From: Marsupella aquatica
Taxonomy: Eukaryota; Plantae; Marchantiophyta
NCBI GenBank assembly: GCA_973895155.1
Contig: OZ316898.1
Location: 14,166,330 to 14,230,329, forward strand
DNA length: 64,000 bases
Direction of reading: 5' to 3'
The translations under genes and the position numbers were made by a program. Positions 7,460 through 63,294 of this stretch are shown here, one piece after another; position 1 is the first letter of the stretch, and each line of letters starts with the position of its first letter. The notes under the pieces were generated by a model that was given only the letters and a program-made list of their open reading frames with translations, searched no databases and had not been told where the DNA came from.

Positions 7460-7492
7460 ATTGAAATATGACGTCATCCTTCATGACAATAC

Positions 7493-31475: not shown

Positions 31476-31573
31476 AGAGCGCATAGGGTGAACTGCGGCT
31501 AGGTGTGAGTGCACACAGTGAGCCAATAGAGCTTGGTTGGGTGCGCCTAAGTTATTATGCTGCAGGTACGTAC

Positions 31574-42421: not shown

Positions 42422-42780
42422 CAGGATACAAAATAATGGTAGCTTGCAGCCCTGCTCATTCATGACTGTCCGCTAATTGCAAGGAACTGTCCACTAATCG
42501 CAAGGAATAATTTGTTTGTATAACAAATTAAGGGTATTATCAAAGATTATAATAACCTAGGAGGATTTTATATATAGGACTGAAATTTCTTTTTAGAATG
42601 AACAAGATAGATTTAAAATAATGTTCCTCCAAAATATAACAACCTTGGGGTACCTGGGGAGGCTTTAATTTGGTCACAGGTATATCTCATTACATTTCCC
42701 TTAGTGAGGGCCCAGGGGATTAAGGATAATCAGGTCATTGGGATTTGGGAAGCTATCAAGAACACTCAACAACCATTGTG

Positions 42781-42888
42781 CTCGGGGGGGTCACTTTCCT
42801 CAAAAGTGCCACATCATGTGCGACGAAGTATAGGGCCATTTAATTGGGTTCGGTGGAAGACTTCCAAAGATTTGTGGAAGAACAACAG
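42781..42888 (+). mobile_element. Left part of a CTCGGGGG-family MITE interrupted by the Sola-like element; continues at ~62684-62735
   Basis: Homologous to 7749-7860. The sequence after 62683 (..CTTTAAAGAACAATAGGC..) matches the continuation seen at ~7860-7910. Confidence 0.75.
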
Positions 42889-43156
42889 AACCCCAATTTA
42901 AGGAAAACCGAACTTTGGAAATTCCGAAAATCACTAAATATTATTATTTTAATAAAAAGGGGGCGACATGACGCGTGGCTGCGCGTGAAACCCTAAAAAT
43001 AACTGCAACGTCACATTTTAACCAATCCAACTTGACGGGACCAAGAGACATGCTCACGCGAATAATAATAACAAAGAAATAAATCTTTGAGATCCTTTAT
43101 ATATGATAACCAGTATATAAGGAGTTTACAAATGGTTTCTAGAACGACAATACAAA

Positions 43157-43900
43157 TTAATCTGATCTCATGCCGACTATTATTTTGGAAGCGTCCAAAA
43201 TTGGGCATCTGTTAAATTGCTCTACTAGATATCTATCTCCATGCCTCTGAATCACAGGGTCTTCCCATAGAGTATGATTATAATCATAATCTCTAAAAAT
43301 AGATTTAACTGACCAATCAGGATAATCTCTTCCATTGGCAATAACAAGCGGCTCACAAGAGTTTGCTAGCTTGCTAAGATACGGAATCAACAAGTTAATC
43401 AGGAAACTGTCGTCGACCGACCCAAAATATTTGGGCGGAAATAATGATCCAATAACAGGATCTAAACAAGCATGAAATGCATCGGATTCGATAAACATTA
43501 TATTTTGCTGCAAATACGCCTTCATATAAATTCCAACCTTCTCAAAACACTTCAAAAATATCCACTTATTTGATGTCACCCCATCGCATAAGTAACAATG
43601 AGACTAATCCCAAATATACTTAAATGAGGCCATTTCCATCGCAGTAAAAATAGATGCTAAAATCTGATCTAAAAGGTTCTTCCCAAGAGAGGACCAGATC
43701 CCTACATCGAAATTCTCAAAATAGAATCTCAAGAATTCGTGAAGATGAGGCCTTGGAAAAATGTATATATTCCCAATCCAAATTCCAGTTGAGACCGCCA
43801 TCAGTTGGGAACGCGGTGCAGTGTAACAGAGTAGATGCTCCACGTCTAAAACTAGAGCCCATTTTCTCTGCTGCAATGAATCTCCTATAGAGAAACACAA
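43157..43900 (-). pseudogene. FCP1/NIF-like HAD phosphatase domain, copy 3 (catalytic motif degenerate; internal stop)
   Basis: ALVLDVEHLL...IFPRPHLHEFL..FENFDVGIWSS...YIWD*...FLKCFEKV...NIMFIES. Confidence 0.7.
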
Positions 43901-44099
43901 GAAGATGCATGAGCCCGTATGGATGTAGTCACACGAATGGTCGCGTCACATATTACAGAGAAAACATCCTCTACACTCTGGCCATTGATAAGTGACGTCT
44001 GTTGAAGTGCTTGATAAGAACTTGATCCGCATGTCTCTGCACGTGCAGATGCTCCCATATATCCTCGTTCAGATCCCAATCTCAATGTAGATTTCTAAT

Positions 44100-44677
44100 C
44101 GACCAGATGGGATAATCGAACTTGTTAGCGAACGCAAGACAAAGCCCTAAATTTGATAGCTTTCATAAATATGGAATGAGGTCATCCCTAAAAAAGACAT
44201 CATCCAATGATCCTTGAAACGACTTAGCGAACAATAATCCGCATACAGCTGTCTGGCATGTATGGGAAGGACAGGCATCAATCTGGATTATATTCTCTGG
44301 TCGATAATCTTGAAACATATCACGTAGTCTCTCGATAGATTTGAAGACAACAGTCTTATAATTTTTCTTCACATAACCAAGATTTCAGCAATGATCCTGC
44401 GTGAACACATATATCAGTTGCGACAGGTCGGTGCTCGACAACACTTCTGAAAGTATCTGATAAACCAGTTTATCATCGAGAATAGACCAGACCATCACAT
44501 CAAAATGATCATAACAGAATTTTATAAGATCATGAAGATGCGGCCTCGGAATGACACATAGAGATCCGATACGAATTCCGGGTGTCGACTGAGCTGAGGA
44601 GTATATTTTGAAACAGAGCACAGGAAGTTTTCCAGTCCTAAAACTAGAAGTTGACGCAACCTGCTCCACTTAGACAC
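44100..44677 (-). pseudogene. FCP1/NIF-like HAD domain, copy 2 (frameshift and stop)
   Basis: LLVLGLENFLC / IPRPHLHDLIKFCYDHFDVMVWS...FTQDHC*...VFKSIERL...PENIIQIDACP. Confidence 0.7.
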
Positions 44678-44808
44678 CTGCAAATGAACAATTCGATTAT
44701 CATATTATGCAATTGCAAACAACCACGCGACCGGGCGCGTCACTCCCAAAATATAAAGTTCAATTTCAATCAATTTATAAATAATAATTGATAATAAACA
44801 ATAAACGT

Positions 44809-45714
44809 TTACTTATTGGACTTATCCCGGGCTTCTATAGCACGGTCTTTTTCTGCAGATAAGTATTTCATAAATTCGTCAAACTTTTCTAAATGGTCTT
44901 TATTCCCCTGATTACGAATGATCACATTTCTCCTCCAAAGATTCGTCTTATCAATATAATCTTTCTCAAGATTTTCTTGAGAGAACGTTGGAATCCCATA
45001 TCCACGAAGGAGCTCGCGGAATGTCAACTTGTCAATTGACATGTCGCATAGATATGGATATAGTTTCTTTCTAAAAAATAGGTCATCATCGAGCCCAGAA
45101 TATGCATCGGGATACAACGATGAATAGAAGTCATTAAGACTCGTCTTATATGCAGCGTCATCGATAAGAATGACATTCTCGATGTTGTAATCTTTAATAT
45201 CGGCGGCAATGTCGGAGAGACATTTGACAAATAAGGGGATGTCATTATTATTCTTCCCTATAAGTCGAGTTGATTCTTGTCCCCATATAAATTTAATACG
45301 TTTCAAAACTTTGGGTCGAAGTATCAGCCTTACACAAGATAGAATATTCCATTTGAACATGCACGACCAGATCGCAATGTTGTATAGATCTGCCACCTTC
45401 TCAAGAAATTCCATTAAATCAGGCCTTGGATAGATAACCTTGTGCATCTGTCTCATACCCCTTGACCGAATGGGCATCCCAGGGATGATCTTCTCTGACC
45501 AGATAAGTACCCGATTCAGATCGAAAATTACAAGTCTCTTCTGAACCGATGACTTCTTTGCCGATGGATTAGGCGCCATCTGTACCTGTGATTTTTGTGC
45601 CGCAGGGTTTGCAGAACGTACTAGAACTGTCTGTTTGTTTCCCGCCTCCGGACGATCACCAAACTTCCGGACTGGTGCCTTCGATACTCGATCGGGGGGT
45701 TTCAGGATAGGCTT
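44809..45714 (-). CDS. FCP1/NIF-like HAD phosphatase domain, copy 1; spliced in frame to the Ulp1 exon
   Basis: KRLVIFDLNRVL...PRPDLMEFLE...YNIAIWS...FIWGQE...VKCLS...ENVILIDDAAYKT; the frame is open from the splice acceptor at 45715. Confidence 0.8.
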   Translation of the reverse strand, partial: KPILKPPDRVSKAPVRKFGDRPEAGNKQTVLVRSANPAAQKSQVQMAPNPSAKKSSVQKRLVIFDLNRVLIWSEKIIPGMPIRSRGMRQMHKVIYPRPDLMEFLEKVADLYNIAIWSCMFKWNILSCVRLILRPKVLKRIKFIWGQESTRLIGKNNNDIPLFVKCLSDIAADIKDYNIENVILIDDAAYKTSLNDFYSSLYPDAYSGLDDDLFFRKKLYPYLCDMSIDKLTFRELLRGYGIPTFSQENLEKDYIDKTNLWRRNVIIRNQGNKDHLEKFDEFMKYLSAEKDRAIEARDKSNK

Positions 45715-45800
45715 CTGTAAAACATTAAGAAATGAAAATAAGTTTATAACGCGAACAATCGCGTGACTACAAAGAGAGACACTGAAATGAAGTGTATTAC

Positions 45801-46535
45801 CTGTACAAGACGGTCGTTCAGTGCTGGAATTCCTCCGGAAATGTCAATCATAGCAGCACGGATCCCGGTAACTAGGTTACTTGCGGACGTCGGCTTGCGG
45901 AAGTCCATGTCAAATAACGACAAGACTATCTCCCTACGGAATTTCTCAATTTGATCCGCGGCAAAATTAATTTTGTTTCCTTGACACAAGCACTTGGCGT
46001 ATCTCAAGATAAACACACCACAACTGTGGCCGTCACTCTGGTGAGGAATATCATTCCGATATATCCGTTCCCAACCTGAGAGATCCAAGTTGACACCAGT
46101 TCTCCAGCCAATTTTGTCGGCGTAGTACTTCCCAACAATATCTAGCACCCTAGGATTTTGTCGATTATGAACTAGAGAATCTAGGTACTCCAGCCGTTTC
46201 TCCTTCGGATACACAACTACCAATGACCAATGTTCTTTCACAGCATTGTGTACTGGAAAGACCAGTTTGTCGTATTGACTGATTTTTAGCGAAAACTCCT
46301 TTGTCCAAGCTGCTCTCTCCTCGTCGAAAATGGTAGGATCCATGGAGAGAAGCTCAAAATGGTGTGTTTGAAAGAATTTGACAAGGTCTGACTTTCCAAC
46401 TCTATCGAGAATCAGTTCGAGAAAACTCAAATAAGCGTTAATTATATCATCGGTGAGCAACTCGCGCGGTCTCAGACACATCATATGTTTCCTCTTGATC
46501 GAGTGTTGTAAGAACTTGGTCAATAGCTCTTCCAT
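45801..46535 (-). CDS. Ulp1/SENP-family (peptidase C48) ubiquitin-like protease
   Basis: LTDDIINAYL, FPVH...HWSLVV, YLDSL and PHQSDGHSCGVF give an intact His-Asp-Cys triad and oxyanion Gln. Confidence 0.92.
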
Positions 46536-46722
46536 ATCCTTAGAAGGATCAAGACATTGATCTATTCAACTAGCCAAATTTTCAAAAAACTGCAAAAAAC
46601 AGAGATTTCAGTATGCCTTCAAATAACGTACTGAGGTTGTAGCCTAAGGGTTCTACCTCAGAAAACAGAAACAATAACAAATCAATAATAAAATAATGAC
46701 GTCTATAATAGAAACTTTAAGC

Positions 46723-48422
46723 TTATAGCTTGCGAATGACCTTTGGATTGGGTGGATCCGGCCTTTTCGCAGTTGATCTCTTGGGTGCCTCAATCGCAAC
46801 AACATCCTTCAGCCCTCCTCGAGACCGCAGTGATCGCTCCACCGGACCAGTTTGCGAAGGTTGGAGCGATGAGGCGGGAAGACCTTCAAATGGTTGTGGC
46901 ATTTGATTGAAATATTCCACAATCTGGGAATCCGATTCCAAAATATCCGGTGCCACAATTTCTGCGCGAGTGACCTCTGCAATATATCGGGGTCGAGACC
47001 ACGAACCCGGTCGCGTCAAGTCAGCTGTTAGTCTCTTAACGACTTGAGCCAAGTCTGGTGCCAAAGACGTTCCCAGGTCTTGCACTCGATTCTCGGAAAA
47101 GCGGACATTATTGATGATTGTCTCCATTTTGGATGCAGTGGCAGTCTTCTCCTCGGTAATCAAAAGACCCTTCCAATATTGCAAAGCAAGGACTACCTGG
47201 ACTCGGAGCTGCTCCGGTGAATATTTATTCCAATCATCCAACGAGACCGTACTTAAGGGTGGATCGTTAAATTCAAACTCCGGGCGAAGAAAATAGTCTA
47301 ATATTTTCTTCTTAACTGCAACTGAGGGTGAAGAAGGCTTCTTCAAATTCAGCCTTATTTTTGGTAGACATTGTGCCTCGGGAATAAGCAAAAGATCCTT
47401 GGCCCTCTCGGCCTCCTTCCTCGCTGCCTCCAGTCTTGCGGCTTCTTCTCTCTCCGGTCTTGCGGAATCGACCTTTTCCGCCTCCAACTTCTCCACCTCC
47501 ACCCTCTCCGGTCTTGCGGTCTCGTCCGCCATCCTCTCGGCCAGCAACCTCTCAGCCGCCACACTCTCCGCCTTGGCCCTATTTGCCTCTGTCACTAAAA
47601 GGACTCTCACAGCCTGGGCTTTCTCAGCCTGGGCTTTCTCAGCCTGGGCTTTCTCAGCCTGGGCTTTCTTAGCCTCGGCTTTCTCAGCCTCGGCTTTTTC
47701 AGCCTCCGCGTTCTCAGCCTCCGCGTTCTCAGCCTCCGCTTTCTCAGCCTCGGCTTTCTCGGCCTGGGCTTTCTCAGCCTCAGCTTTCTCCTTCTTCTTC
47801 GCGGCAGTTGCTTTTCTAGCTGCTGCCTTTTTCTTCTTAGCCTCCTTCTTTTGAAGCTCCTCTTGCCGGGCCGCCTTTTGCCGGGCCGCCTCTTGCTGGG
47901 CCGCCTCCTCTCTGGCCTCCTCCTGCCGGGCCGCCTCCTTCTTTTAAAGCTCCTCTTGCCGGGCCGCCTCCTTCTTTTGAAGCTCCTCTTGTCGGGCCGC
48001 CTCCTGCCGGGCCGCCTCCTGCCGGGCCACCTCCTGCCTGGCCGCCTCCTGCCGGGCCTCCTCCAGCCGGGCCTCCTCCAGCCGGGCCTCCTCCTGCCAG
48101 ACCGCCTCCTCTTTGGCCTCCTCCTGCCGGGCCGCCTCCTCTCGGTCCACCTCATGTCGAGGCTCTTGTGTGGCCTCTTCATCAAAGTCCTCAGCGTCCT
48201 CAGAACCCTCCATCTCCTCGTCCTCTTCATCAGCGTCCTCAGCGTCCTTCATCTCCTCTCCGTCACTCTCTTCATCTCCTCTATTGTCGGAATCTCCATC
48301 CACTTCTTGAATGTTTCGTCCTCCATTGTAAAGAGAAACGGAGCCAATTCTCCAAATTTCATCATTTCGTTCTTCCCCATTTGAGCCCATGGGCAAACAA
48401 AACTCGTAGCTCTCATAAATAC
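46723..48422 (-). pseudogene. Acidic and charged coiled-coil linker region of the cargo protein (EAARQ and AEKAQ/E pentapeptide repeats), frameshifted
   Basis: 15-bp tandem repeats at ~47610-48140; ORFs 47944-48447 and 46723-47610. Confidence 0.6.
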
Positions 48423-48521
48423 CTGAAAAACAATGGAAACATGACAATTCTAAGCTTGACTTGACCGTTCGCGTGACAAAAGTTTAAACGATAATGTGAT
48501 CGAAGAGGGTTATTTATATAC

Positions 48522-51038
48522 CTTCGAATTTGGATGACAATAATGTGATCCAGGCCGCCCAAATGAGTTCCAGATATTACGACACTGTCGTACAATGGTG
48601 AGAAACTGTCCTTCTTCCATTGATGTTTGATGACAGTGGTTCAGAGCTTTCGATAATCCCATCAAATGAACATTATTGTCGTTGTTGAGCGTTGCCCAAA
48701 ACATTACAGCTTCTACAGTACCGCAAGCATCTCGTACAACTTGGCTGACTTTGTCGTCCTCTTTCAGCAATTTGTACACCATTATTGTGTGCTGGCCTCC
48801 GAGTATCCAGAAATGACTGGTCATAATGTCCTCGTCCTTTGGCGCCGAATCGTAGGGCGCCCCATTGTAGTCGGGATCTCTGTCGGCCTCCGACTGAACC
48901 CACTTCACAAGGACTAAAAAGCAGCATCGCTTTTCGAACTTTATAGCCGAATGAGAGAGGAGTGAATTCTTTAGCCTATCTGTGTAATCCTGATTCCACT
49001 CTCGGCACTTGATGTGGTCCGGTGCAAGATGACAACGTGATGTCTCAACAAAAAATGACTTGTTGTTAAATATATTCACAGCACTATATTCTTTGAGGAA
49101 AGAATCGAATAGAGCCCCGACATTCGCTGAGGTAATTACTTTCGGAAGATTCTCCGCCGAGTATACTTCAACCTTGCTCACTGGCGGGGCCTTTCCCAAG
49201 CGAAATCCCTGGTTGAAAGGAACTCTCTGGAACTCAAGTACGTCAATAATGTATTGACAAATCAAATCCCCTGGGCCCTCAGCGTTACTAATGCAAGGAG
49301 GACGTGCGAACAACGCAAGGGTATTTTTAATGTAATGCAAACTAATTTTTATAATGTTTTTTAAAGTAGGCAACATCCATGTATATACATTCATCACAAT
49401 ATTAGTAATAAGGCTCTTATCAAATACATGTCACATTAATCTTATGCAAGGGTACCTAAAATGCCAAGGACACATGTCACTATATGGTTGGCACACATGT
49501 CATCACTTCATTGGCACACATGTCCATATAGTAAATCAGACATTTAATTATTTATCCTCTTAAGGCAAGTTTGGTTTCATGGGCTTGCATGGTAGACTTG
49601 TTTACCTGCATGTGTTAAGTAAATGTTGGGCCAGGATTTTGGGGCCCAACTCATTTGGGGTTCTGGGATTGATGGGGACCCATGAATCAATCCCACATAG
49701 ACAAACAAGATTACTTTTGAATTCCCTCGAATCAAATGGCCAGGTATGAGGCCAGGTGTGTTTGTGTGTGGGTTGGTGTACTCCCTTGATCATTGGGTTG
49801 GGGGTGGTACCCGGTGCTCACAGTTGTTTGATTGCAGAGATGGCAGGAAAATTACCCACCATGTCTAAGTAACAATTTCAGCCAAAGGAGATTTGATGGT
49901 ATTACTCTCCACAATTTTCAGTAGTCATTTTTTGTATTATTAGTACTTTGTGTCTAGAATATATATGATTAATGTGTGGTTTGATGTGTCAAGTTGCATG
50001 AAAGAAGTTGCCAAAAACTCTACTTATCATTTGGTGTTAATGGTTGATGTCATACCATTCTTAGTCAAGATAGAATAATTTAGCAATTGGAGTTTACATA
50101 AATAGTATATATGCAATTATTCCTCCAAGGATATAGCATAGCATAATAATGCCTTTGTACTAGTTCAGTTTATCTCTATGAGGTCTACAAGTTGCCTGAG
50201 TTATAGTCATATACTCTAGGAAGAACTATAAATCTTTAGTACTAATTTTGTTATGATCTATATAAAATATGTACCGTGAACATCAGCGTAACATAATATT
50301 TCCCTATGCAAAATAGAATCTTTTATGGTTCAGTATGATATTTACAATTTTTAAAAATTCAAGGGTTTTTTTAATTTCTTGAAAAACTCTGTTATAATTT
50401 ACAAAAGGATAAATTTTTATAGGAAAAAATAATGTTTTTACATTAACAATGGATTTTTTTTTGTGAACAAAAATATTAAGAAGGGGTACACGGGGGGTGT
50501 CTGTTCTCAGGGGGGTTCACTTAATATAGTAAGAGTGAGGGCCTAGGGATCAAATCTCCCGTTGATCCCTCTGGATCGGAAGGATATCCCACACTAGTAA
50601 CCTTTTCCAAGGCGTGCCTTGCACCTAGAAGATCATCGATTCTGGGCTGATTGAAGGTTACATATTGCGTTTGATCCAAACAAATGCTTATTTTGTCCTC
50701 CTGCTGGTCGTCGCTGACTAGCAGAACCAACACTCTTTAACTTTCATGTTCTTCTCAAAGAAACACCCGAGAATTTGTGATCTCTCCAAAACTGTAGCTT
50801 TATCATTTTTTGCCACCACAAGATGACAGCGCCATTGCGAACGACTATTCCAAAATTGGATATCTCAGTCGATTCAAAGAGATGGATACTCTTTGTCTCC
50901 GTTGTTCTCTCTCTGATTGACTTTCCTCGATATGCAAGTATGGATGTCTCCGCGGGAGTCATTTTTGTCTTGGCTTTCTTACGAGAAGCAGCTTTAGACG
51001 AGTCTCTTTTCTACTTTGAAGTTCCGGTAGGATCCATT
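48522..51038 (-). pseudogene. ParB/Sulfiredoxin-like (DGQHR-type) domain exon, interrupted by a MITE
   Basis: CREWNQDYTDRLKNSL...FWILGGQHTIM...ALN. Removing 49269-50548 and one TSD restores GSTGDLI|CQYIID in frame. Confidence 0.6.
49269..50548 (-). mobile_element. 1.28-kb non-autonomous element, CCCTGGGCCCT-TIR family; inverted relative to 41391-42421
   Basis: Perfect 8-bp TSD ATCAAATC (49261-49268, 50549-50556); both ends homologous to the 41391 copy. Confidence 0.92.
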
Positions 51039-51112
51039 CTGAAACAGACAAATATTGAAAGTTAAACGTTTATTATAAAATACTAACACGCGCATGGTCG
51101 CGTCATGCCGAA

Positions 51113-51679
51113 TTACATTTTAGGAACGTTTATCCTGACCCAATCTTCTCGCTCATCTTCATCTAACCAAAACCAAAGGTTCCTAAATGTGTCAAGTTCA
51201 GATCCTTCAAATCCACCCAGAATGTCCAGCGGCGGGAGAGTTCTGATGGATTCTGTAAATCTTAATGCGACACTCCGTGAAGTCAAATGCCTTCGAAGCG
51301 ATTCATATCCTGGTCTATCAGTGAAGTCATAAGCTACCAAGGTGACCGTCGCCCAAGTACTACTATAAGTAACTATGTGGCACCACTTCTTACTGACTGT
51401 TCGAATGGTGATCAAGTCCATGACCCGATTTTTAATCGCAGTATCCGACAAATTCCCAAGACAATGGAAAAACTCTTTGACTAATGGCCAAATATATTTC
51501 TCGACAATATCGTTCGGAAGACCGGGTATCAGGTCTTCAACTTGACTCCATATCATGTTTCGGTTGATAACCTTTGCACGTGCAATGCGCTCCATCATCA
51601 TTTGACGATGAGATTTTTGATTCATGTCAAAGGATTGCAGCATAATATGGAAAAGATTAAGAACAAGAACTGGGACCAC
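51113..51679 (-). CDS. F-box-like protein/exon 3
   Basis: LIPGLPNDIVEKYIWP...IRTVSKKWCHIV....W. Confidence 0.7.
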   Translation of the reverse strand: MVPVLVLNLFHIMLQSFDMNQKSHRQMMMERIARAKVINRNMIWSQVEDLIPGLPNDIVEKYIWPLVKEFFHCLGNLSDTAIKNRVMDLITIRTVSKKWCHIVTYSSTWATVTLVAYDFTDRPGYESLRRHLTSRSVALRFTESIRTLPPLDILGGFEGSELDTFRNLWFWLDEDEREDWVRINVPKM

Positions 51680-51824
51680 CTAGATTCTGAGAAAATCTAC
51701 CAAACCTTTCGATTAGAACATCTCGTTCTTCCTCATCTAAATTGTTATATTTGTTCATAATCAATGTGATTTCGTCATAAGTAGTAGTCCCAAGAACAGA
51801 TATTTCTGGAAGCATAGAAATATC

Positions 51825-52229
51825 CTATCGAATAACTAGACAGACTGAGTCAAACTCCAACTCGTTAGTTTTGGGTATGTCGTAAAGAGCTTCATTTGCG
51901 ACATCAACAATCCGGTTTGCTTGTTTGAGCATATCCCATAACCTTGTATTTGTAACTAAAAATTTCCACTTCTTGCTACAAGCTCCAAGCCGAATAAGGT
52001 CTCGGACCCTATCGATAACCAAATCGTTATCGAGGTGTCGATATCCACGCAATCTTTCAATTGAAATAAAGTGTTCGTAGAGTATTGGCCAAATGTTTGA
52101 AATGACCAAAACATCTGGTATTTCTCCAATGAGACTAGAGGAGGTTTCATCCAGCGTATCCCATATTGTTTTCTGTTTCCTTTCATGAGATGAAAGGAAA
52201 TCTCGAGCCTCATTCAAAAGTTGGCTCAT
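51825..52229 (-). CDS. F-box-like protein/exon 2
   Basis: LIGEIPDVLVISNIWP...LGACSKKWKFLV....LW. Confidence 0.65.
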   Translation of the reverse strand: MSQLLNEARDFLSSHERKQKTIWDTLDETSSSLIGEIPDVLVISNIWPILYEHFISIERLRGYRHLDNDLVIDRVRDLIRLGACSKKWKFLVTNTRLWDMLKQANRIVDVANEALYDIPKTNELEFDSVCLVIR

Positions 52230-52294
52230 CCTGCTTTTATCATATCACAAAACATTGTTAGAAGACATACGACGCGCTTGGTCACGTAAGTTAA

Positions 52295-52846
52295 CTAGAA
52301 TTCCTTAAAAGCGTAGATGTCACCCTCAAGGTATCCAACTTCGTGGCATCTGACTGTAAATTTCCATTTTTCAAGACGGTGAAGAGCATCGTAAGTCTTC
52401 GTGAAGAGTTCCCTAAGATCTCTGGACATTGACCCCATGAATTTAATTCTTGGGTATTTCTGGAAGAAACTTTGAACTGTCGATGAGAGAGACTCATTTC
52501 CGATCGGTTTAGTAGGATTTCGTGGGAAAGCCAAATCTAATAAACTCAACTTGATTACACCCAGAAGATAGGTATTCCCAACAAGGTGACACCATCTGCG
52601 ACACACCGAAGATAGTCCTACAAACTCATCCAATTCCTTTATTGAGAAATTTCCTGCATTAGCCGAGGAATTAAAAGTCTCCTTGATCCGAGGCCATATC
52701 AATTCCGCAACAATGAAATCTGGAAGTCCAGGTAGTAGTGTTTCAACAAATACAGAATATCCCGCCAGTAGACCATCTTGGCTTCTGTCCAAAACATCAA
52801 ATATTGGGCATAGATATCTGAAGCTCTCCAGACCAGGTTCGCCCAT
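52295..52846 (-). CDS. F-box-like protein/exon 1
   Basis: LLPGLPDFIVAELIWP...LSSVCRRWCHLV. Confidence 0.7.
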   Translation of the reverse strand: MGEPGLESFRYLCPIFDVLDRSQDGLLAGYSVFVETLLPGLPDFIVAELIWPRIKETFNSSANAGNFSIKELDEFVGLSSVCRRWCHLVGNTYLLGVIKLSLLDLAFPRNPTKPIGNESLSSTVQSFFQKYPRIKFMGSMSRDLRELFTKTYDALHRLEKWKFTVRCHEVGYLEGDIYAFKEF

Positions 52847-52984
52847 GACTCTTTTTAGCCAAATGATATATCCCAGAGATTATTTTCACACGACTGGTTG
52901 CGTCTACAAATCAGAATGTATAAACAATTCTTTGAGAGACTGATTTTTTCGGGTCACAACGTGACAAATCATAAATGTTGCTTC

Positions 52985-53550
52985 GTCCTCTAACAGAACC
53001 AGTCAATGAGAGAGCTACCTCAGACGCGAATGGTCACGTCAACTGCTCCTAAATGAAACCTTACCTCCTCTAACAGAACCAGTCAATGAGAGATCTACCT
53101 CAGACGCGACTAGTCACGTCAACTGGTTCTAAAAGGAACCTTACCTCCTCTAACATAACCATTCAATGAGAGAGCTACCTCAGACGCGACTGGTCGCGTC
53201 AACTGAACCTAAACAACTATATCCATTGAACCTTCCTTGTGGATATTTGGATATGGTATGCGCTCAATAAATCTATCCAGTTTCCTTCTCACACGCGACT
53301 GGTCGCGTCAACTGGTCCTAAAAGGAACCTTACCTCCTCTAACAGAACCAGTCAATGAGAGAGCTACCTCAAACGCGACTGGTCGCGTCAACTGAACCTA
53401 AACAACTATATCCATTGAACCTTCCTTGCGGAGATTTGGATATGGTACGCGCTCAGTAAATCTATCCAGTTTCCTTCTCACACGCGACTGGTCGCGTCAA
53501 CTGGTCATAAAAGGAACCTCACAATATTTTCACGCGACTGGTCGCATCAA
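52985..53550. repeat. Tandem array (~76-bp and ~100-bp modules), each carrying the ACGCGACTGGTCGCGT palindrome
   Basis: CCTCTAACAGAACCAGTCAATGAGAGAGCTACCTCAGACGCGA... four times; about 7 palindrome copies. Confidence 0.9.
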
Positions 53551-56169
53551 CAGCTCAAACAACTTTTGGACACTAGGATAATACAGTGATAAAACTATGA
53601 TTACTGACCCGTACGGACAAGGAAATCCGAGTAAGCATGATTTCATTCATTTGTATTCATTCATGAACTTTACAATAATTCAGATGTTTGAGCTCTGTCA
53701 TTGTGAAACTATTATATATCAGAAGTTTAGAGAACGATTCAGCTAAGATGATTCAATTTAGCAGTCTACTGGTTGTATTCATCAATTAAAGGATTCAGTG
53801 TAATGAGATTCACATAACATGAGAGTTTATATGATTAAATTCACAGCGTGCAAGTTTGTAATGAGTTTGTAATGAGTTTGTAATGAGTTTGTATGATTCA
53901 CACATATTTGAGTTTACAAACAAACCGCATTATGAAAACTCAGCTTAACAATCAAGAGAAATTTTAGCAAACAACAATCAACACCAACAGAAAATATAGA
54001 AATTGCACCTGAATTCTAAAAATTTGATGTAATCGTCTGAGAGATTGACCAAGCACTTGAAGACCTTGCTGCGGCATTCCAGAAAGTAAATATAAGATTG
54101 AAGATAATAATATGCTAAGCAACAACAACACAGCTTCTATACTTCTATACATAGAGCTTCGCTGCCACCAATTGAATAACATGTACTTAATGCTAAGGAA
54201 CTCATTATGTCGAGTTAAAAAGACTCTTTCAGAAGTACAATCAAAGCTATGGATAGGCAAACTGAGCATGAATAAAAGCGCACTAAACCTAAAGATTCAA
54301 AGAGGTGAAACAAACCTGAATGCTGAATGGAAGGAGCTGAAACAAGCTGCCAAATAGTAGTTCGAGCTGCTGAAACACGTTGATCGAGCTGATATGAGCT
54401 TAAAATTGGCTGACATGAGCTGATACGAGCACTCCCAAAAAACTAGCTGCAACGAATCCAACGGGCTCCTAAGAATCCCTTCGAGCAAACTAGAAGTGAA
54501 TACAAGCTGTAAATGCAAGCTGCAACGCGCCAACGAGCTCTGGTCGAAACGATCGACAACTACTAAGAGCTGCAACGCGCCGACAAGCACCTGACCACAA
54601 CGAACAAGCTGCAACGACAAAAATGAAATCCAGGGCAGGAGCAAGAGCGACGAGAGCGAGAGTGAGAGCGACGAGAGCAGGCGCACGAAAGTCTAGGGAG
54701 CGAGAAACAACAACAATGAACAGTGAACTCAAGACCGTGGGCGCCAACACTAAGGAAGGACTAATTAGGGTATTGTTTTAGCATAACCCTAATAACAGCC
54801 TAGCGACAGGAAGATTCCAGATGATCTCCGTACACTCCACCATCGACTCAAAAAACTATGCAATCGTGAAAAAACGATTACCGGATTCCTTTTGATTTGC
54901 CGTACTAAAGGAGATTTCTATTTGATCGCCAATTTGAAATTTAAACCGGTAATTATGCAACTGCAAAAGATTGTTAGTGGGGACCCCCGGATCCGGATCC
55001 GGATCTGTATCTTCACTATATCTGCCAATTCAATTTAAAATGTCAACGAACGACAACTTTCTCACAATCGTTCCATCACGTAATGGAGGCAAACTTCAAA
55101 ATCATTCCATTTTGGTAGTGGAGACCGTTGGATCCGTACTCCACTCTCTATCTTGCCAATTCAAACCCATACTCTAAACAACGTAAAACGATTCTCACGG
55201 TCGGGGAGAACCGATATTCAAAATCAATCCTGTACAATGATTCTCACAACTGGAGACTCAACCAATTTTCAAAATCAAAATCGAGTCTAGATGAACACAT
55301 CCTTCATGGAGTCAATAGACAGATCTCATTGCTCACGGATCATTCCTCATTTTTAGTTTCTCCTGACCAGGATACTAGCTGGGCTCTCAGCGGAGGCTGA
55401 TCCAAGGCACATTTGAGGTGGAGCAGATTGGATCATTCGACTATTCCAGTCGGAGGCGGAGCTCAATCAAGCAACACTGGCGCAGTTCTTGTTGTATCAC
55501 CTTCAATCTTGGGGAGAGCACATCCGATCAAGCGGGAGAGTTGCGACGAAGTGAGATGACAAACATTTAGAACCTCCATAGTCTGCCTCATTCATCGAAG
55601 CATACTAGCGGACCAACAAAGAGCGGATATTCTGAAATCACTGTCTGGTCGAGGATTTTGATCTTGATACGATCAACAAGTTGTCATTCTCTGGTGGTGC
55701 GATTCGGTCACGATACTCAAGGAAATTGGAGTTCGAAGGAGGAGGCTTAGTTGGTTGGGACGAGGAGGCTACGCTGGAAGGAAGAGGTTTGGCTGGGAGG
55801 AGGGTTTCCACCAACATCGGAGGGTTGCCACCAACATTGCTGAGACCACACGCAACTGAATAACTTGTAAGTATCAATCAACATTAATTCCGCAATAAAT
55901 GAGGAGAGTAGTTGCCTTAAATCACGCCTTCAATGCATGAATTGACTCAATGAAGTTATGGTCCAATTTCTCACTCCAATTTTGATCAATCCGTGTTTCA
56001 AGTCCAATACAGAAGCAATGTATCAGAAGTACTAGTAGAGGATCCAAATGAATTCTCTAGTCTAAAATTGTATGGCGTTCAAGTCTAGTTGTCCGTACAT
56101 TTTGCTATTGTTTATTATAGTTGACGGCCTAGCAAAACGAAACGTAATCGAGGTCCATTTTTCAGATCA

Positions 56170-56830
56170 GACTGCTCTCAACTTGTTAGTAGGATGACAT
56201 GATTTTTTGGTTACACATGTAGTTCGTCACGCGCACAGTCGCGTGAACCAATTTATCTCGTGTCTTTTGATATTGTTTATTGTAGTCCACAGCCTAGCGA
56301 ATTGGCCAGCAATCTATTTTAAAAGCAACGTCTTCGGTTTATCACGCGCACGGTCGCGTTAATGTTTTCGAGGTCAGCAAAAGCTCTGCACTCTTAGACG
56401 TAATCGCCCTTTATTTCTTAGATCTTCCTGATCTCAACTTGTTAGTAGGATGACCTGTTTTTCAGTTACACATGTAGTTCGTTACGCGCACAGTCGCGTG
56501 AACCAATTTATCTTGTGTCTTTTGATATTGTTTATTGTAGTCAACAGCCTAGCGAATTGGCCAGCAATCTATTTTAAAATCGAGGTCTGCGTTTCATCAC
56601 GCGACCGGTCACGTTAATGTTTTAGAGGTCAGCAAAAGCTCTGCACTCTTAGACGTAAATACCCTTTATTTCTCAGATCTGCCTGATCTCAACTTGTTAG
56701 TAGGATGACCTGTTTTTGGTTACACATGTAGTTCATCACGCGCACAGTCGCGTGAACCAATTTATCTCAGGTCTTTTTGATATTGTTTATTATAGTCGAC
56801 AGCCTAGCGAATTGTCAGTCAGAGGAATCT
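56170..56830. repeat. ~255-bp tandem repeat (about 2.5 copies) with two palindrome copies per unit
   Basis: TCTCAACTTGTTAGTAGGATGAC...CACGCGCACAGTCGCGTGAACCAATTTATCT recurs three times. Confidence 0.9.
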
Positions 56831-57060
56831 CGATTTTTCCTTGATTGCAAAAATGGTTACATCAATCCCGAAGGACTTTGGATGTGGAATCCATATCCAC
56901 TAGCACTATCCAGGAATTTAACTGACCTGGTCTTTCGAACACTATTTTCCACGGGACGAAATTAAGCTACACAGTATCTATAACAAGTTCTAACTTGAAC
57001 TACTCTTGAATCTGTAGTTCTAATCTTTGACTACTCAAAATATTGTTGACTTCGATCGAG

Positions 57061-57432
57061 TCAGTCATTCCAAGATGAAGGCATCCACTCATCGGTGTCT
57101 GGTGTGGATTCCCTTGAATCCAGAAATTCTTTCTTTGCCCAAGTCTTAACGTCCATAGATTTTCTCGGCTTGCTCTTTCTGTAATACAAATCAGAATCTT
57201 CGTTCATCTCTAATTGCCTTTTCTTCGGTGCGTCCACTTTCTTGGCCTCCTTCTTGACTGTCTTAGCGTCTGCTGCTGCTTCCCCCGAAATGGATTCGAC
57301 GCATGCTCTGGCCTTCAACTTCTCCCCCCTCGAAACAGATTCCACGAGGGCTTTGCCCTTTAACTTCTCCCCTGATGCCATCTTTGTAGTCATCTCTGTC
57401 GGATTGGTCTCCATCTGATCTTCCATCGACAA
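57061..57432 (-). CDS. Small charged hypothetical ORF in the Sola-like element
   Basis: 123-aa K/E-rich ORF with an internal duplication (GEKLK.KA/RA.VES.S); TATA-like sequence ~300 bp upstream on the minus strand. Confidence 0.35.
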   Translation of the reverse strand: MSMEDQMETNPTEMTTKMASGEKLKGKALVESVSRGEKLKARACVESISGEAAADAKTVKKEAKKVDAPKKRQLEMNEDSDLYYRKSKPRKSMDVKTWAKKEFLDSRESTPDTDEWMPSSWND

Positions 57433-57914
57433 ATATGGCGAACAATGTCGTCTCTCCTAAAACATTTGACCCGATTTAGTCACCATAAACATTATATTAC
57501 ATCGCTGACACATTCTGTAAGGAGTACCATGAATTCGATACGTCGAACCTTCTGAAACATCCGTCGGAACATCCTCATTCTTTGAGCTCAGCGGAGTAGT
57601 CATCGCCCTTCAAACAAGAGATGCGGACCGAGACTAAGAATTGGAAATGAGAGAGCTGATGTGCGAATAGATTATCCAGTAGCCAGAAAGTGGAATGCGT
57701 GGGGGAATGAGCAATAGGGATCATCTCAATGCTTTATACTGTTTAGTCTCCACTAGACAGTCATTGTACATAGTGGTTTCTAGAAGAGAGTGCGCGTTTG
57801 ACTGGCGCGTATTAGAATTGGCGGGAAGTTCAGTTGTCCTTTAATTATGGCTTTAATTTCACGTTTGGCGACCGCCCCGGGAATACTGATTGCTAGTGAA
57901 GTACTAAGATCTTA

Positions 57915-58745
57915 TGAGGGTCAGTAGTTACTGACTGTCCGGTGTTCACTCATTGGTAAACTGGTACTGTCCACTCATTTTTTCTGAGTGGAGTTGAAAT
58001 GATTGTTTGTAATTGATTGTAGTCGTTCTCATTCACTTGAAATGACTGACGGACCATGCATAATCTGTTACCGGTATGTGTGATGCCTTTAGATCCGTAA
58101 TTGTATCTTCTTGTCTCACGCGCAATTGTATCTTACTTATGAAGTACCAAGTACGAGCTAGAGTTTGGGCCTAGCCTTCTAGCTTCTATGTCGTAGACCC
58201 TGTTATCCCTACACCCTCTGACTAAGGTCACGCGACATGCCTTTAGATCCATAATTGTATCTTCCTGTCTCACGTGCAATCATATCTTACTTATGAAGTA
58301 CCAAGTACGAGCTAGAGTTTGGGCCTAGCCTTCTAGCTTCTACGTCGTAGACCCTGTTATCCCTACACCCTCTGACTAAGGTCACGCAACTAGTCACGTG
58401 CAGGGCAGTGCATTGACTATATTCTGCCTACTTATTGACGGTCGTGATAGGACAATGCAGTTCATGGACATTTTACTGGCACTTATTAGCATTACTGTCC
58501 TCAGTAGTTACTGACTGTCCACTCATTTATTCTGAGTGGATGTGAAATGATTGATCGTAATCGATTGTGGTCGTTCTCATTCATTTGAAATGACTGACGG
58601 ACCATGCATAGTCTGTTGCCGGTATGTGTGGTACCTCTAGGGTCACGCGACCAGTCGCGTGCAGCGCAGTGCATTGACTACATTCTGCTTATTGACCAAC
58701 GTGACAGGACAGTGCAGTGAAATTGACGGACGTGACAGGACTGTA
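57915..58745. repeat. Duplicated blocks (~165 bp x2, flanked by a ~150-bp x2 block) upstream of the transposase, with palindrome copies
   Basis: 58086-58235 repeats at ~58238-58390; TCAGTAGTTACTGACTGTCC blocks at ~57921 and ~58501; TCACGCGACCAGTCGCGTG at ~58643. Confidence 0.85.
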
Positions 58746-58787
58746 TGCTTACAGTGATATTCTCTGATGTGCAGGATCATAATTATT

Positions 58788-61700
58788 ATGGTGACATCTA
58801 CAGTCTGGATCAGGGAAGGCAAACACGTTATTATAGGCATACGTGAGAAACAGGTTGGAAAAGGTCGCGTGATAAGTCTTGATCCTTCCAGGGTTTGTCA
58901 CAATGTTCCTCTTGGGGCGGACAAAGTTCTTCTTCTATTGGAGGAAGTTTTTGACGAGACCATTCTATGCAAAGATGGCAAACTTTTGAAGGACATGATT
59001 GGGGGTTACCTTGTATGGGAAAGGAATCAGCTTTTTCGAGCTCCCATGGAATCGGAGGATGTGTTTGGCACTGTTGGTGATGATCAAGATCCAGTCAATC
59101 AAAATTCTGATGGGAACAACCATAATGAGAGTCGGTCTGGTGTGGAAGTAGTTTTACCAAAGGCCTTGTGGATGGGCATGCCTGTAAAGGTGGTGGATGA
59201 GAACAAGTTGATTTTTGCAGTGGCAACTATACATGTTCTAGATCCTATAGTCAAGCTTGGGGATGTCACCCTTGGGAATACACATGTGGGAATTCTGATC
59301 AACAATTTTGTCGAGGGAGCTACCATAGATCATCTGAAGCATAGAGATTGCTTAAAAGCTTGGTCGATGGACCAACTCATTGCCAAGGATGGCAACTTGT
59401 TGTCTTTCCACAACATCAGGCAAGCTGTGGGAGGGAACACATCTCCAACAAGTGGCAAGCGGTCCTACGTCCATAAAAGTAGGAAAAGAAAGAGTCCATC
59501 TTCCCAGACATCTAGAAGAGACACATCTTTGGCACGTCAAGATGTGTTGTTGATAAACACTAAGGACTGTTGTAGTGAACATTGTTGCCAATATTTGGAC
59601 CGCAACTTGGCTATGGCAATTAGGCAAAAGTGGTGGTCAAAATCTTTTGCGGAGCGCAAGGAGGAGGAAATCAAGGCTATTAAAAATACAATACACTTGG
59701 GTACTGGAGAAAGGATTCTAGCAGTGGAGGGCAAAGTATTGTGCTTGGAGGCATGGAGAATCATTCATTCAAGAGGAAAGACTCAATTTTATGCCTTGAA
59801 GAAGACTGTGATGGCTGGAATGAACATAGGTACCCATGGTAATGCTGGAAAAAGGCGTATGTCCGAGAAAGTATCTCAAGCGTTCATGTCAATGAAAGAG
59901 ATTATTGAGGAGGCAGCTGATCATCATCCAGCCAAGTTGAGAACCATGGCAGATAATACAAGGATGGTTTTGAGGGAATTGCCAACAAATCTTACTTGGG
60001 AGAATATTAGAAACAGGGTTAATATTGTCAACCAGGAGGCTGGTCTTCCTCCAATTTCCCAACCCACCTTGAGTCATCTACATCAGATGTATTTCAGGGA
60101 GTTCTCACGTCACAAAAAGGGCAACAACTTTTCAAAGTGTACAACTTGTAGTGAGTTGCTTCAACGGAAAGCAAACCTTACAAGAGCTAAGGAAGAGTTA
60201 GAGGGCCTAAGGCGTGACGAGGAGGAACATCACCAAGACCACACACAGCAAAGAATGTGCTATCATACCTGGAGATATGAGTCCATCCATCGTCCAAAGG
60301 AAGTGTTATGCCTTATTCACATGATAAGATGGATCATTCAAAGACAGCTCTCCCAAGAATGCCCTTCAATCCTAAGCATGTGGATGGTGCCCAAAAGTTC
60401 CCAATTACTGTCACTGGTATCCTTACTCATGGTCATGGTCCCAAGGCCATAGCCCAATATCATGTTGGAGTGTGGCCAGGTGATGTCAACATCACTATTG
60501 GGTCAATTGATTCAATACTAAGGATGTTGGAAAACCCAAATCCAATGATCAAATCACTTGTGGAGGGGCCAGACTCGACAAGTCTTTTTAAAGACCTCCT
60601 TTTTGGGAGAGCAGATATCTTGGAGGCAAGTGTCCCTAGAGCATTTGAGGATGACATTGCCTACATCTCAAGCCTAGGTACTTTACTCACAATCCTTTAA
60701 TTTATTATTATTTAATAATATAAGCTCACACACACTGACACTCTACTTTGTGTAGTTGTTGCTCCTCCTAGTCAAGGTTTCATTAATAGGGTTTAAACCC
60801 TAAACCCTAAATTGGGGTTTAGGGTCTGACTAGGGTTTTATTTAAAAGCATTCTGAGATTGTTACATTGTGATGCAGCACCTGAGGCACCAAAGTTCAGG
60901 CCCCTTCCACGAGTATTGAAGCTACAACTGGATAATTGTGCCTCAGACAACAAGAACAGATATATGATGGCTTATTTGTCATTGTTGACGGCAAGGGAGG
61001 TGTTTGAAGAGGTTCATCTTGGTTTTATGGTGGTTGGGCATACTCATGAGGACGTTGACGGTATGTTTGGGCATTTTTCAGAGTCTATGATGCATAACCC
61101 CACATACTCATTGCCTGAGTTAATGTCCTTGTTCATGAGAGCAAGGACACCCAATGCAGTCCCACATTTTCTACAGGAGGTCCCAGATTTCAAAAACTAC
61201 TTAGCTCCATTCATGTTGAAGGGCCCTAAGGCATTGGTGGGGCATTTAAAACCCAGGCTGTTTAGGTTCTATGTTCGTCATGATAGTATGCCATGCTTCC
61301 AATACAAAATGAAGTCAACTGATCAGGGATGGTTACCCAAGGAAGGTATTGAAATGTGGTCATGGAAAGATGACAAAAGTCCTCACATCCCAATTGGGGT
61401 GCCCAAACGGCTACCAATGATGGAGTTGAAAATGCTTCCTGAAGTGCTGACAGGGTTGAAGAAGCATGTGTCATTCTTTGAGTTTATTCTAAAGCGAACA
61501 AAAGAGGAAGAACCAAAGCGACGTTGGACAACTCTCATCAATTATTGGAATGACATTGTAGATACTCTACAGGGTGAGCAGGTGCAATATGAACCTGAAG
61601 GTGCACACAACTTGGAATATGGGTTTTGGCCTTTATCAATATGGAGAGAGCACGTTCCACCAGAATATCGAAATGTGGCATGTGAGTTGGAGGCAACAGT

Positions 61701-62173
61701 GGATTATGTGGGACCAGCAAAAGATAAACCTCCTGAGAGTTTTAACCCTAGGGTTGATGTTGTGAAGGGCTATTATGTGTTGGTACGGCCGGACGACTCA
61801 GACCTGGATGTTTATCCCGTCCATATGGGGTTAGTTGTTACAGATGTCAGTGGTAGAAGGACCAGTGAATGAACAAAACCTTCTTCTTACTCATGTATGT
61901 GGTGTTGAGTGGTTTAGACCATTTATGGCAAAGAAGCAACGTGGTCAATCAGACTGGCAGCCAAGAGAGCGGTGGGCAGATTCTTGGGATAAGAAATGGG
62001 AACGTGATCCAACTCCAATATACAAGGAAGCTGAGACAATAGATGTTTCCTCTGCCTTGTGGTGTTTCAAAGCACGTAAAGGACCAGTGACAGGGCTGGT
62101 AGGAATTCCAAAGAATGTTGCTGTCAAGGCAAGAGACTATCTCTTGACATGCATAGCAAGTGACAAATCCTAG
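58788..62173 (+). pseudogene. Sola1-type DDD transposase with two N-terminal Tnp1/En/Spm-like domains; intron ~60678-60877; frameshifts near 60320 and 61850
   Basis: CCSEHC, CLEAW, HGN, FSKCTTC, HDKMDHSKT, LQLDNCASDNKN, FMVVGHTHEDVDGMF. Confidence 0.8.
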
Positions 62174-63294
62174 ACAGTAATGAAGCATGTAGTTTAGCAT
62201 ACAGTTTAAAAGGCAACTCAGAATAGTAGTAGCCAGAGAACTCAAGTTTAGACAAGTCTTATCGTCTAAGTTAGTTAGTTGGTTAGTTTATTTAAGATAT
62301 AATATTAGTTAGTGGGGCCTTAGTTTGGTGATATTAAGGCATGATATTATTGACATTCAAATGAATGTCCAGTAGACATTGTAATATACAACAATCATAT
62401 TAATTGTTGTAAAGGGTGGTCAATCTTTTTTGTATTCAACCCTATAGTAATTAAATAGACAATTGAAACAATGAATGACAGTTTAATTAAGGATTTGTGC
62501 ATGGATCAAGAGGTACTTGATGTCATTTAGTGATGCATTGTTATAAAGATCTTGCAACAAAACATTTGAAGTTTTTGACTATCCCACCAAATGTTAAAGA
62601 GGTTGATCATTCATTAACTTATAATATTTAGATAAAATGAGAATTAATCTAATACTTTAGTATTCCTTAAATTGGGGTTATAGTGTTCGTTTTAATTGTT
62701 GGGCCGCTTTAAAGAACAATAGGCATTTATTAAATGGGATATATTCCACAGAAGATGTCCATATAAGTTAGGTTTGCTCGCATTAGTCAGTATATACCCT
62801 CCCTTTATACATGTCTTCCCTCTAGATTTTAAATATAAGATGTGAGACTCAACGGAATGGTGAACTACAATTCAGTTCTGTTGCTTCTTTGTATGCTTGC
62901 TCATCCTATTGATGGTGTTCATCGCATTATATATTTGACTCTGACCCTGGGGCATTGTTCTTTTTATACGCAGGCTAGTACTCAATGGAATGAAAACAAT
63001 TCACCTCTGATAAGAGCTATGTGCTCCATATTATGAATTTGCATTGATACTTTTGCTTTGTTCATGTTTGATCACAGGGTCAGCAGACGGCCAGCCCGGC
63101 ATGGGCCCCGACCCAGGAGTTCACCTTTCAAGGGAGTTACACACTATAAGAGGACAGGGAGATGGGAAGCACACATTTGGTGAGATGTGGTTCAAACTTT
63201 CGTAAAAAATGGTTCTAACTGATGCTAAAATCGTCAGCATAAGACTGAGTTTTGTAAGCAATGTTTTACTTCGATCACTTAAAGAGCTTGCTCT

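Follow-up and report, generated by a model that had tools for sequence, protein, structure and literature searches.

The giant DNA transposon Sola1-1_Ec32 of Ectocarpus is 21.5 kb long, makes a 4-bp target-site duplication (TSD) and carries, on the strand opposite its transposase, a gene in which a ParB-like part is fused to a DNA methyltransferase (Genome Biol 2025; PMC12477816). Its transposase finds its best BLASTP match in Repbase Sola1-1_PPa of Physcomitrella (PMC12477816), Sola1 being already known in a moss. In red algae, ParB-like accessory genes named PAG3 adjoin inverted-repeat arrays in Plavaka, Mutator and Zisupton elements (bioRxiv 10.1101/2025.02.11.637652). For ParB-like fusions beside such arrays, the authors of the algal studies proposed self-binding and self-modification (PMC12477816; bioRxiv 10.1101/2025.02.11.637652); algal ParB-type accessory genes with private repeat arrays were described recently and without functional tests. 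In this study, we analyzed a stretch of 64,000 nucleotides (the window, to which all positions refer unless a contig is named) from the liverwort Marsupella aquatica (assembly GCA_973895155.1, contig OZ316898.1, positions 14,166,330 to 14,230,329), in which a sequence-only reading had proposed a giant Sola-like transposon with a toolkit of protein-modification genes. We conclude, at a probability of roughly 0.85, that positions 42889 to 62679 hold one inactivated copy of a multi-copy giant liverwort DNA transposon of the Sola1 superfamily with a divergent accessory cassette.

The Marsupella element shares with Sola1-1_Ec32 the DDD motif series of the transposase, the 4-bp TSD, termini of the form AACC...GGTT, a size of about 20 kb, an accessory gene opposite the transposase, described as ParB-like in Sola1-1_Ec32 and putatively so here, and the common occurrence of nested insertions. 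It differs in its terminal inverted repeats (TIRs), which are 17 bp long as against 282 bp and imperfect in Sola1-1_Ec32, and in its cargo. Whereas Sola1-1_Ec32 has the single fused accessory gene, the window element carries an Ulp1 gene, three F-box-like and three NIF-like open reading frames (ORFs) and an acidic repeat ORF, and no methyltransferase remnant was found in the window at E 0.05. The view of Sola elements as transposase-only, from which the sequence-only reading started, is outdated by the ParB-methyltransferase gene of Sola1-1_Ec32 (PMC12477816). With the red-algal PAG3 elements the window element has in common its giant size, a putative ParB-like binder coupled to a modifying activity, and inverted-repeat arrays; those elements differ in having an EnSpm/Plavaka transposase and 2OG oxygenase, N6-methylase or SET partners, and Ulp1, F-box or NIF genes are not reported from them. 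Of the features that define algal-type giant transposons, repeat arrays beside opposite-strand accessory genes are present in the window element and a fused DNA-modifying domain is absent.

The layout is thus one known from algal transposons, and what is new is the Ulp1 gene in the position of the methylase together with the F-box-like and NIF-like genes. In a literature search, no Sola element with Ulp1, F-box or NIF-like genes came up, and no transposon of any kind with NIF-like cargo, in keeping with the earlier statement that this gene combination was not known from Sola elements. Plant MULE (KAONASHI-type) and CACTA elements are familiar carriers of Ulp1 domains. The window element resembles these in bearing a C48 SUMO-protease domain on a plant DNA transposon, and it resembles VANDAL with its VANC in the idea that a transposon-encoded factor targets motifs within the element and makes it hypomethylated; the superfamily differs in both cases, and no homology to VANC was seen, no search aimed at it having been made. 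Here, unlike in KAONASHI-type MULE, CACTA and VANDAL elements, the protease is accompanied by private palindromes and by a protein that may bind DNA sequence-specifically.

Boundaries and target site

The element is a 19.8-kb unit bounded by TIRs. Its left end is the 17-bp sequence AACCCCAATTTAAGGAA and its right end the exact reverse complement. With up to three mismatches, this sequence was matched five times in the window (0.41 expected), and only the two element ends match perfectly; perfect 17-bp TIRs had been noticed from the sequence alone. The 4-bp copies outside the TIRs, ACAG on the left and ATAG on the right, differ by one change. When the left and right flanks were joined, the alignment ran over the junction to copies of a repeat resembling a miniature inverted-repeat transposable element (MITE) at 7749 to 7911 and 31574 to 31690, which read GAAGAACA-ATAG-GG and contain ATAG once. 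Public contigs matching the left flank have loose ends at 42884/42885, where they go on as ATAGGGCATG.... Since uninterrupted copies of the host repeat hold a single ATAG, the 4-bp duplication is real, and the left copy was changed later from ATAG to ACAG (T>C). The element entered a MITE-like repeat by cut-and-paste and duplicated 4 bp, which bears out both the TSD and the insertion into a MITE claimed before.

The host repeat family has C(C/T)CGGGG(G)TCAC termini and at least five copies in the window, including 42779 to 42888, 7155 to 7911, 30348 to 30453 and 31571 to 31870. It is very abundant in public runs, where its depth is 5 to 15 times that of the Sola cargo (bin 42822 to 42995).

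Transposase and superfamily membership

Four plus-strand ORFs, at 58758 to 60449, 60281 to 60697, 60823 to 61869 and 61835 to 62170, make up one gene, which matches Pfam DUF7869. An exhaustive HMMER search with the 349-amino-acid (aa) transposase exon returned 3067 relatives, the named ones being from the liverworts Calypogeia fissa (58% identity) and Riccia sorocarpa and also from Chara braunii. The closest relative, on Logan contig L005, has two continuous ORFs with a short intron between them; because its frames are continuous where the window frame shifts at ~60320 and ~61849, this copy carries two transposase frameshifts. In alignments with 7 to 11 homologs, full-length relatives included, the Asp columns in HD(K)M, LQLDN and HTHEDVD are invariant, and the residues of the DDD triad are still present in this copy despite both frameshifts. 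Together with the DUF7869 match, these columns uphold the earlier call of a Sola-type DDD transposase on the plus strand.

A comparison with the printed protein sequence of Sola1-1_Ec32, made motif by motif and by eye, revealed a common series: CC..C, C..C, MMDG/HDKMD, VDN..ENKN/LDN..DNKN and MVGHTH.ID/VVGHTHEDVD. The termini read AACCCC...GGGGTT in the window element versus AACCG...CGGTT in Sola1-1_Ec32. Judged by its 4-bp TSD, its DDD triad, this by-eye motif series and its termini, the element belongs to the Sola1 superfamily.

Palindrome arrays and CpG content

The central non-coding region between the two divergent gene sets contains three tandem arrays carrying CACGCGACTGGTCGCGTG, an 18-bp CpG-rich palindrome (Table 1). 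With up to three mismatches it has 16 sites, all 16 of them inside the element, compared with 0.02 expected in the window. Solitary sites stand 5' of cargo ORFs, mostly in short gaps, and a last one stands ahead of the transposase. In the Calypogeia contig L001, which holds the closest transposase relative having long flanks, arrays of another palindrome, CACGAGCCATGGTTCGTG, lie upstream of the transposase (contig positions 6508 to 7338) and in its intron (9647 to 9702). As the palindrome differs and its position is alike, the palindrome is lineage-specific and its placement conserved.

Against a background of 0.53 for the window, the observed/expected ratio of CpG rises to 0.89 in the cargo and to 0.91 in the centre and drops to 0.29 in the transposase gene. 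In the C. fissa contig L003 (1 to 23693), the corresponding values are 0.86 for the cargo, 1.23 for the centre and 0.46 for the transposase. The MITE nested in the window element has a ratio of 0.23.

The cassette as part of the element

The roughly 10 kb of minus-strand cargo lie, as first described, inside one TIR- and TSD-bounded Sola-type element, and they are part of the element lineage, not a nested foreign insertion. TIRs and a TSD belonging to the cargo itself were looked for, and no inverted-repeat pair brackets any cargo block. In the window outside the element, only the nested MITE has a counterpart among the element parts. Since the private palindrome occurs both in the cargo gaps and in the 5' region of the transposase, a nested foreign origin is hard to reconcile with the sequence. 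In three public runs, 600 to 1889 contig pieces of 85 to 100% identity fill every bin of 42300 to 47500, and depth in the subterminal bin does not exceed that in the cargo bins, contig depth being distinct from copy number.

Cargo homologs with open frames are also present in other samples. Word-indexed protein searches gave one match each for the ParB-like gene (P0178, 54% identity), Ulp1 (P0001, 50%) and the first NIF-like ORF (P0177, 36%). In L003, a transposase 32% identical to that of the window stands head-to-head with a GQHS exon, an 838-aa ORF and a NIF-like ORF, and a second cassette holds two NIF-like ORFs in tandem; the 838-aa ORF has an N6_N4_Mtase match at 5.4e-5, below the cut-off. 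On the metagenomic contig L004, a ParB-like homolog lies upstream of its transposase. The window element and L003 thus share the head-to-head layout, the GQH(S/T) exon, NIF-like genes including tandem ones, lineage-specific palindrome arrays, and CpG-rich cargo beside a CpG-poor transposase. They differ in that L003 has the N6_N4_Mtase-like ORF where the window element has the acidic ORF and Ulp1, and neither tblastn nor phmmer found an F-box-like ORF or Ulp1 in L003.

Table 1. Features of the Marsupella element, in window order (positions within the 64,000-nucleotide window)
Feature	Position	Strand	Remarks
Left TSD copy	42885-42888		ACAG; one change from ATAG
Left TIR, 17 bp	42889-42905	+	AACCCCAATTTAAGGAA; starts AACC, as in the published Ectocarpus Sola1 termini
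NIF/FCP1-like ORF 3	43160-43945	-	Pfam NIF 7.2e-9; LDVEH; same-frame ORFs split by TAG 43604-43606
Solitary CACGCGACTGGTCGCGTG	43930-43947		in short gap 5' of NIF-like ORF 3
NIF/FCP1-like ORF 2	44166-44669	-	Pfam NIF 4.5e-4, below cut-off; in-frame TGA 44385-44387
Solitary CACGCGACTGGTCGCGTG	44724-44741		in short gap 5' of NIF-like ORF 2
NIF/FCP1-like ORF 1	44812-45579	-	256 aa from ATG; Pfam NIF 6.9e-10, above cut-off; FDLNRV
Ulp1/SENP-type cysteine protease domain	45747-46565	-	Pfam Peptidase_C48 1.4e-20, above cut-off
Solitary CACGCGACTGGTCGCGTG	45748-45765		in short gap 5' of NIF-like ORF 1
Acidic Lys/Glu-rich repeat ORF	46726-48483	-	upstream of Ulp1 domain; 15-bp tandem repeats; in-frame TAA 47944-47946
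Putative ParB-like gene	48513-51010	-	motif ILGGQHT; broken by frameshift ~50820 and nested MITE
Nested MITE, 1.28 kb	49268-50548		inverted copy of repeat 41390-42718, inside ParB-like exon
Solitary CACGCGACTGGTCGCGTG	51087-51104		in short gap 5' of ParB-like gene
F-box-like ORF 3	51116-51679	-	188 aa; Pfam F-box E 0.004, below cut-off
F-box-like ORF 2	51828-52244	-	139 aa; Pfam F-box/F-box-like E 0.003, below cut-off
F-box-like ORF 1	52298-52879	-	194 aa; Pfam E 0.05-0.08, below cut-off
Central non-coding region	52887-58661		between divergent gene sets; tandem arrays carrying CACGCGACTGGTCGCGTG
Solitary CACGCGACTGGTCGCGTG	52887-52904		5' of F-box-like ORF 1
Tandem array, 80/189-bp units	52986-53519 (palindrome array to 53548)		carries CACGCGACTGGTCGCGTG
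Tandem array, 255-bp units	56157-56814		carries CACGCGACTGGTCGCGTG
Tandem array, 154-bp units	58083-58387		carries CACGCGACTGGTCGCGTG
Last CACGCGACTGGTCGCGTG site	58644-58661		~105 bp ahead of transposase ATG
Sola1-type DDD transposase gene	58767-62170	+	Pfam DUF7869, E 6.6e-37
Transposase exon 1	58767-60679	+	frameshift ~60320
Catalytic Asp codons	60323-60325, 60931-60933, 61051-61059	+	
Transposase intron	~60680-60897	+	
Transposase exon 2	60898-62170	+	frameshift ~61849
Right TIR, 17 bp	62663-62679	-	exact reverse complement of AACCCCAATTTAAGGAA
Right TSD copy	62680-62683		ATAG

Accessory genes

The Ulp1 domain aligns with the catalytic domain of SENP1 over ~200 residues (E 2e-18), and the HW, LDS and Q..G.SCG motifs are present. 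The catalytic His, Asp and Cys and the oxyanion Gln are all in place, and the protease is predicted to be catalytically intact; with its Peptidase_C48 match, the Ulp1 protease of the sequence-only reading is retained. Upstream of it lies the acidic ORF, in which 15-bp and 33-bp tandem repeats (47520 to 48140) encode Lys/Glu/Ala-rich repeats; on the opposite strand the same repeats give spurious Pentapeptide-like ORFs. The C-terminal part of this ORF has a weak homolog beside a NIF gene in another species. There, on a Logan contig from another sample (L006), the acidic ORF (2 to 784) lies directly upstream of a NIF-like gene (1041 to 1733) without Ulp1 between them, and the NIF ATG follows a strong acceptor-like site.

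Among the NIF/FCP1-like ORFs, the first is uninterrupted, and its open frame extends upstream to an acceptor-like AG at ~45714. It keeps the nucleophile Asp and has Asn in place of the second Asp; its homolog P0177 reads LDVNKV. The TGA stop in the second is TGG in every public contig there (44385 T>C, at full depth, in four runs), so this stop is private to the window copy. Homologs of the third are present in L003. The second Asp of the motif DxDx(T/V) has a role generally known from HAD phosphatases. This motif is missing from the cargo, where the first ORF has D-L-N-R-V and the third D-V-E-H-L, and from relatives with DVNKV, DVKGV and DLNKI. All transposon-borne NIF relatives examined have Asp-x-Asn/Lys/Glu in place of Asp-x-Asp; since the altered motif is kept across them, it is conserved and not a product of decay. 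Because the second Asp is missing, the NIF/FCP1-like ORFs are probably not active phosphatases. The three FCP1-like domains proposed earlier therefore stand in part: the Pfam matches of the first and third are significant, that of the second is below the cut-off, and the active-site motif does not hold.

The putative ParB-like gene is interrupted in the window; in P0178 the corresponding protein is encoded without a break, in a single ORF of 418 aa. Its label is based on the sequence ILGGQHT, i.e., a GQH(S/T) motif, on an Atlas match at rank 15, and on homology to the GQHS exon of L003, which precedes the methylase-like ORF. The MITE within the gene is bracketed by a 7-bp direct repeat (49261 to 49267 and 50549 to 50555). 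Removal of the MITE and one copy of this repeat restored the ParB-like frame exactly, so the MITE landed in an exon. This copy and the one just outside the Sola element (41390 to 42718), both of about 1.3 kb, are 86 to 92% identical over aligned blocks and end in CCCCTGGGCCCTCACT.

The three F-box-like ORFs show 23 to 29% mutual identity and have LPD..IWP...VSKKW in common. In all three, the match to the F-box profile is limited to profile positions 18 to 45, its second half (E 0.003 to 0.08). A profile built from the three ORFs matches the F-box region of SKP2 weakly (E 0.14), and for F-box-like ORF 3 the ten nearest Atlas clusters having a family are all F-box. No substrate-binding domain was found in these ORFs, which probably encode F-box-only proteins. 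The ORFs behind the three F-boxes claimed initially gain weak support from the SKP2 match and the Atlas neighbors, and fall short of the Pfam threshold.

Splice-site evidence is mixed on whether the cargo ORFs are exons of one spliced transcript for a polyprotein. Acceptor-like AGs ahead of the frames of the first and second NIF-like ORFs would agree with this; against it, a genuine stop codon terminates the first NIF-like ORF, and joining the ParB-like to the acidic ORF by the simplest donor/acceptor pair would break the frame.

State of this copy

In this copy the transposase is frameshifted twice, the ParB-like gene is hit by one frameshift and by a MITE, there are three in-frame stops in the cargo, and the two TSD copies no longer match. 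Because the transposase and several cargo genes are broken, it is dead and non-functional. At ~336 positions in 5.2 kb, the window differs from public contigs by at least 10% of depth, and at the 40 best-supported sites nearly all depth disagrees with the window. Written from window to read, the differences fall most often into the classes A>G and T>C; this copy has thus undergone mostly G>A and C>T substitutions, and many of these abolish a CpG. The best-supported sites include 16 non-synonymous and 7 synonymous changes, a pattern that looks neutral. The copy is a fossil that was probably methylated after insertion, and its value lies solely in documenting the gene set.

Possible function and alternative explanations

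Several observations weigh against the reading of a giant Sola1 transposon with a working accessory cassette. The ParB-like fold claimed in the sequence-only reading is unproven: alignments of the protein found no match in Pfam, NCBIfam or PDB-sequence profile searches, and the AlphaFold single-sequence model reached a predicted local distance difference test score (pLDDT) of 34, which is unusable. The F-box matches all lie under the Pfam threshold, and the structure prediction for F-box-like ORF 1 from a three-sequence alignment was likewise unusable (pLDDT 41). The NIF-like proteins are without the second catalytic Asp. In L001, where the transposase is 58% identical, no cargo was found in the 7.7 kb upstream, which hold another repeat, and no TIR was found in the flanks of that copy. 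The depth of public contigs is not equal to copy number. None of the RNA runs contains the stretch, and gene models and splicing are predicted. Finally, instead of active protection, the CpG contrast could have arisen because CpG-rich binding sites are under selection, or because the transposase carries methylation of the gene-body type.

To our knowledge, experiments have established transposon-encoded anti-silencing factors in eudicot VANDAL elements only. By a similar logic to VANDAL VANC, the putative ParB-like accessory protein may bind the element's own palindromes sequence-specifically and, once bound, would recruit or cooperate with protein-modifying partners at the element's chromatin. 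These partners would be an active deSUMOylase, small F-box-only adaptors that borrow the host SCF ligase, and Asp-x-Asn NIF-like proteins, i.e., catalytically altered relatives of C-terminal-domain (CTD) phosphatases that might bind phospho-CTD. The outcome would be a self-targeted anti-silencing that keeps the element transcribed and unmethylated. The sequence-only reading had likewise suggested a counter-defence or chromatin-manipulation module. The private palindromes and the CpG retention in the cargo half give this idea indirect support, as does the pairing of ParB-like proteins with neighbouring inverted-repeat arrays in the published algal elements, and we put it forward as a tentative proposal. 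In a broader form, liverwort Sola1 elements would be modular, with a palindrome binder tethering exchangeable effectors and so keeping the accessory half unmethylated over evolutionary time. The effector would be methylase-like in some sublineages and, here, a deSUMOylase with F-box-only adaptors and pseudo-CTD-phosphatases. The basis for this is a CpG ratio of ~0.9 in the accessory half versus 0.3 to 0.5 in the transposase gene in two distant lineages; we regard this broader form as speculative, and doubtful as it stands.

The main functional rival of anti-silencing is that the cargo serves transposition itself, with the palindrome binder marking the element or building a transpososome and the other proteins tuning the stability or nuclear activity of the transposase. 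The movement of many plant DNA transposons depends on a further DNA-binding protein, such as those from the second ORFs of PIF/Harbinger or CACTA elements; the palindromes are arrayed subterminally or centrally and come near the start of the transposase, and none of the present results shows an effect on silencing. On the other hand, the palindromes stand away from the element ends, where neither the 17-bp TIRs nor the 270-bp subtermini contain them, and ahead of cargo ORFs instead. As CpG retention points to a chromatin state and the published authors favor self-modification for the algal ParB fusions, a role in transposition seems to us unlikely. We find it improbable that the accessory ORFs are non-functional captured fragments (Pack-type) that persist only through recent amplification of the family. 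The missing catalytic Asp of the NIF-like ORFs, the sub-threshold F-box matches and the neutral-looking differences of this copy from the family majority (16 non-synonymous versus 7 synonymous) are what such fragments might show, yet the neutral pattern speaks only for the decay of a dead copy. Moreover, the F-box-like paralogs are just 23 to 29% identical and still have open frames and conserved motifs, reading frames stay open in homologs that are 36 to 54% identical, both in other samples and in Calypogeia, the catalytic residues of Ulp1 are intact, and the conservation of Asp-x-Asn across the transposon-borne NIF clade argues for a selected, altered function.

A composite origin would make the Ulp1/F-box/NIF block a fragment of another transposon (e.g., an Ulp1-bearing MULE or CACTA element) or of host genes that landed within a plain Sola element. 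Such an origin would accommodate the frequency of Ulp1 domains in plant MULE and CACTA elements, the many nested repeats of the window, the MITE nested in the element itself, and the lack of cargo within reach in L001. It becomes highly improbable given that no TIR/TSD pair surrounds any cargo block, that the same private CACGCGACTGGTCGCGTG stands both in gaps between the cargo genes and 5' of the transposase, that NIF-like and ParB-like cargo adjoins distant Sola1 transposases in Calypogeia, and that public runs cover the cargo as deeply as the subterminal region. We rejected a nested foreign element on these points.

If the accessory cassette is as read here, F-box-only genes and Asp-x-Asn NIF-like genes would each add a new class to the cargo known from transposons. 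The lineage would also offer, in land plants, a tractable comparative system for the evasion of silencing by DNA transposons, in which effector modules vary on a constant scaffold of Sola1 transposase, palindromes and putative binder. Transformation is feasible in liverworts such as Marchantia.

Other motifs

The telobox-like motif AAACCCTAA is enriched in the whole window (9 occurrences versus 0.78 expected) and is therefore not element-specific. Within the element it forms a tandem pair in the transposase intron (60790 to 60825), beside the TIR-like AACCCCAATTTAGGGTT, and it also occurs in the left subterminus (42988 to 42996).

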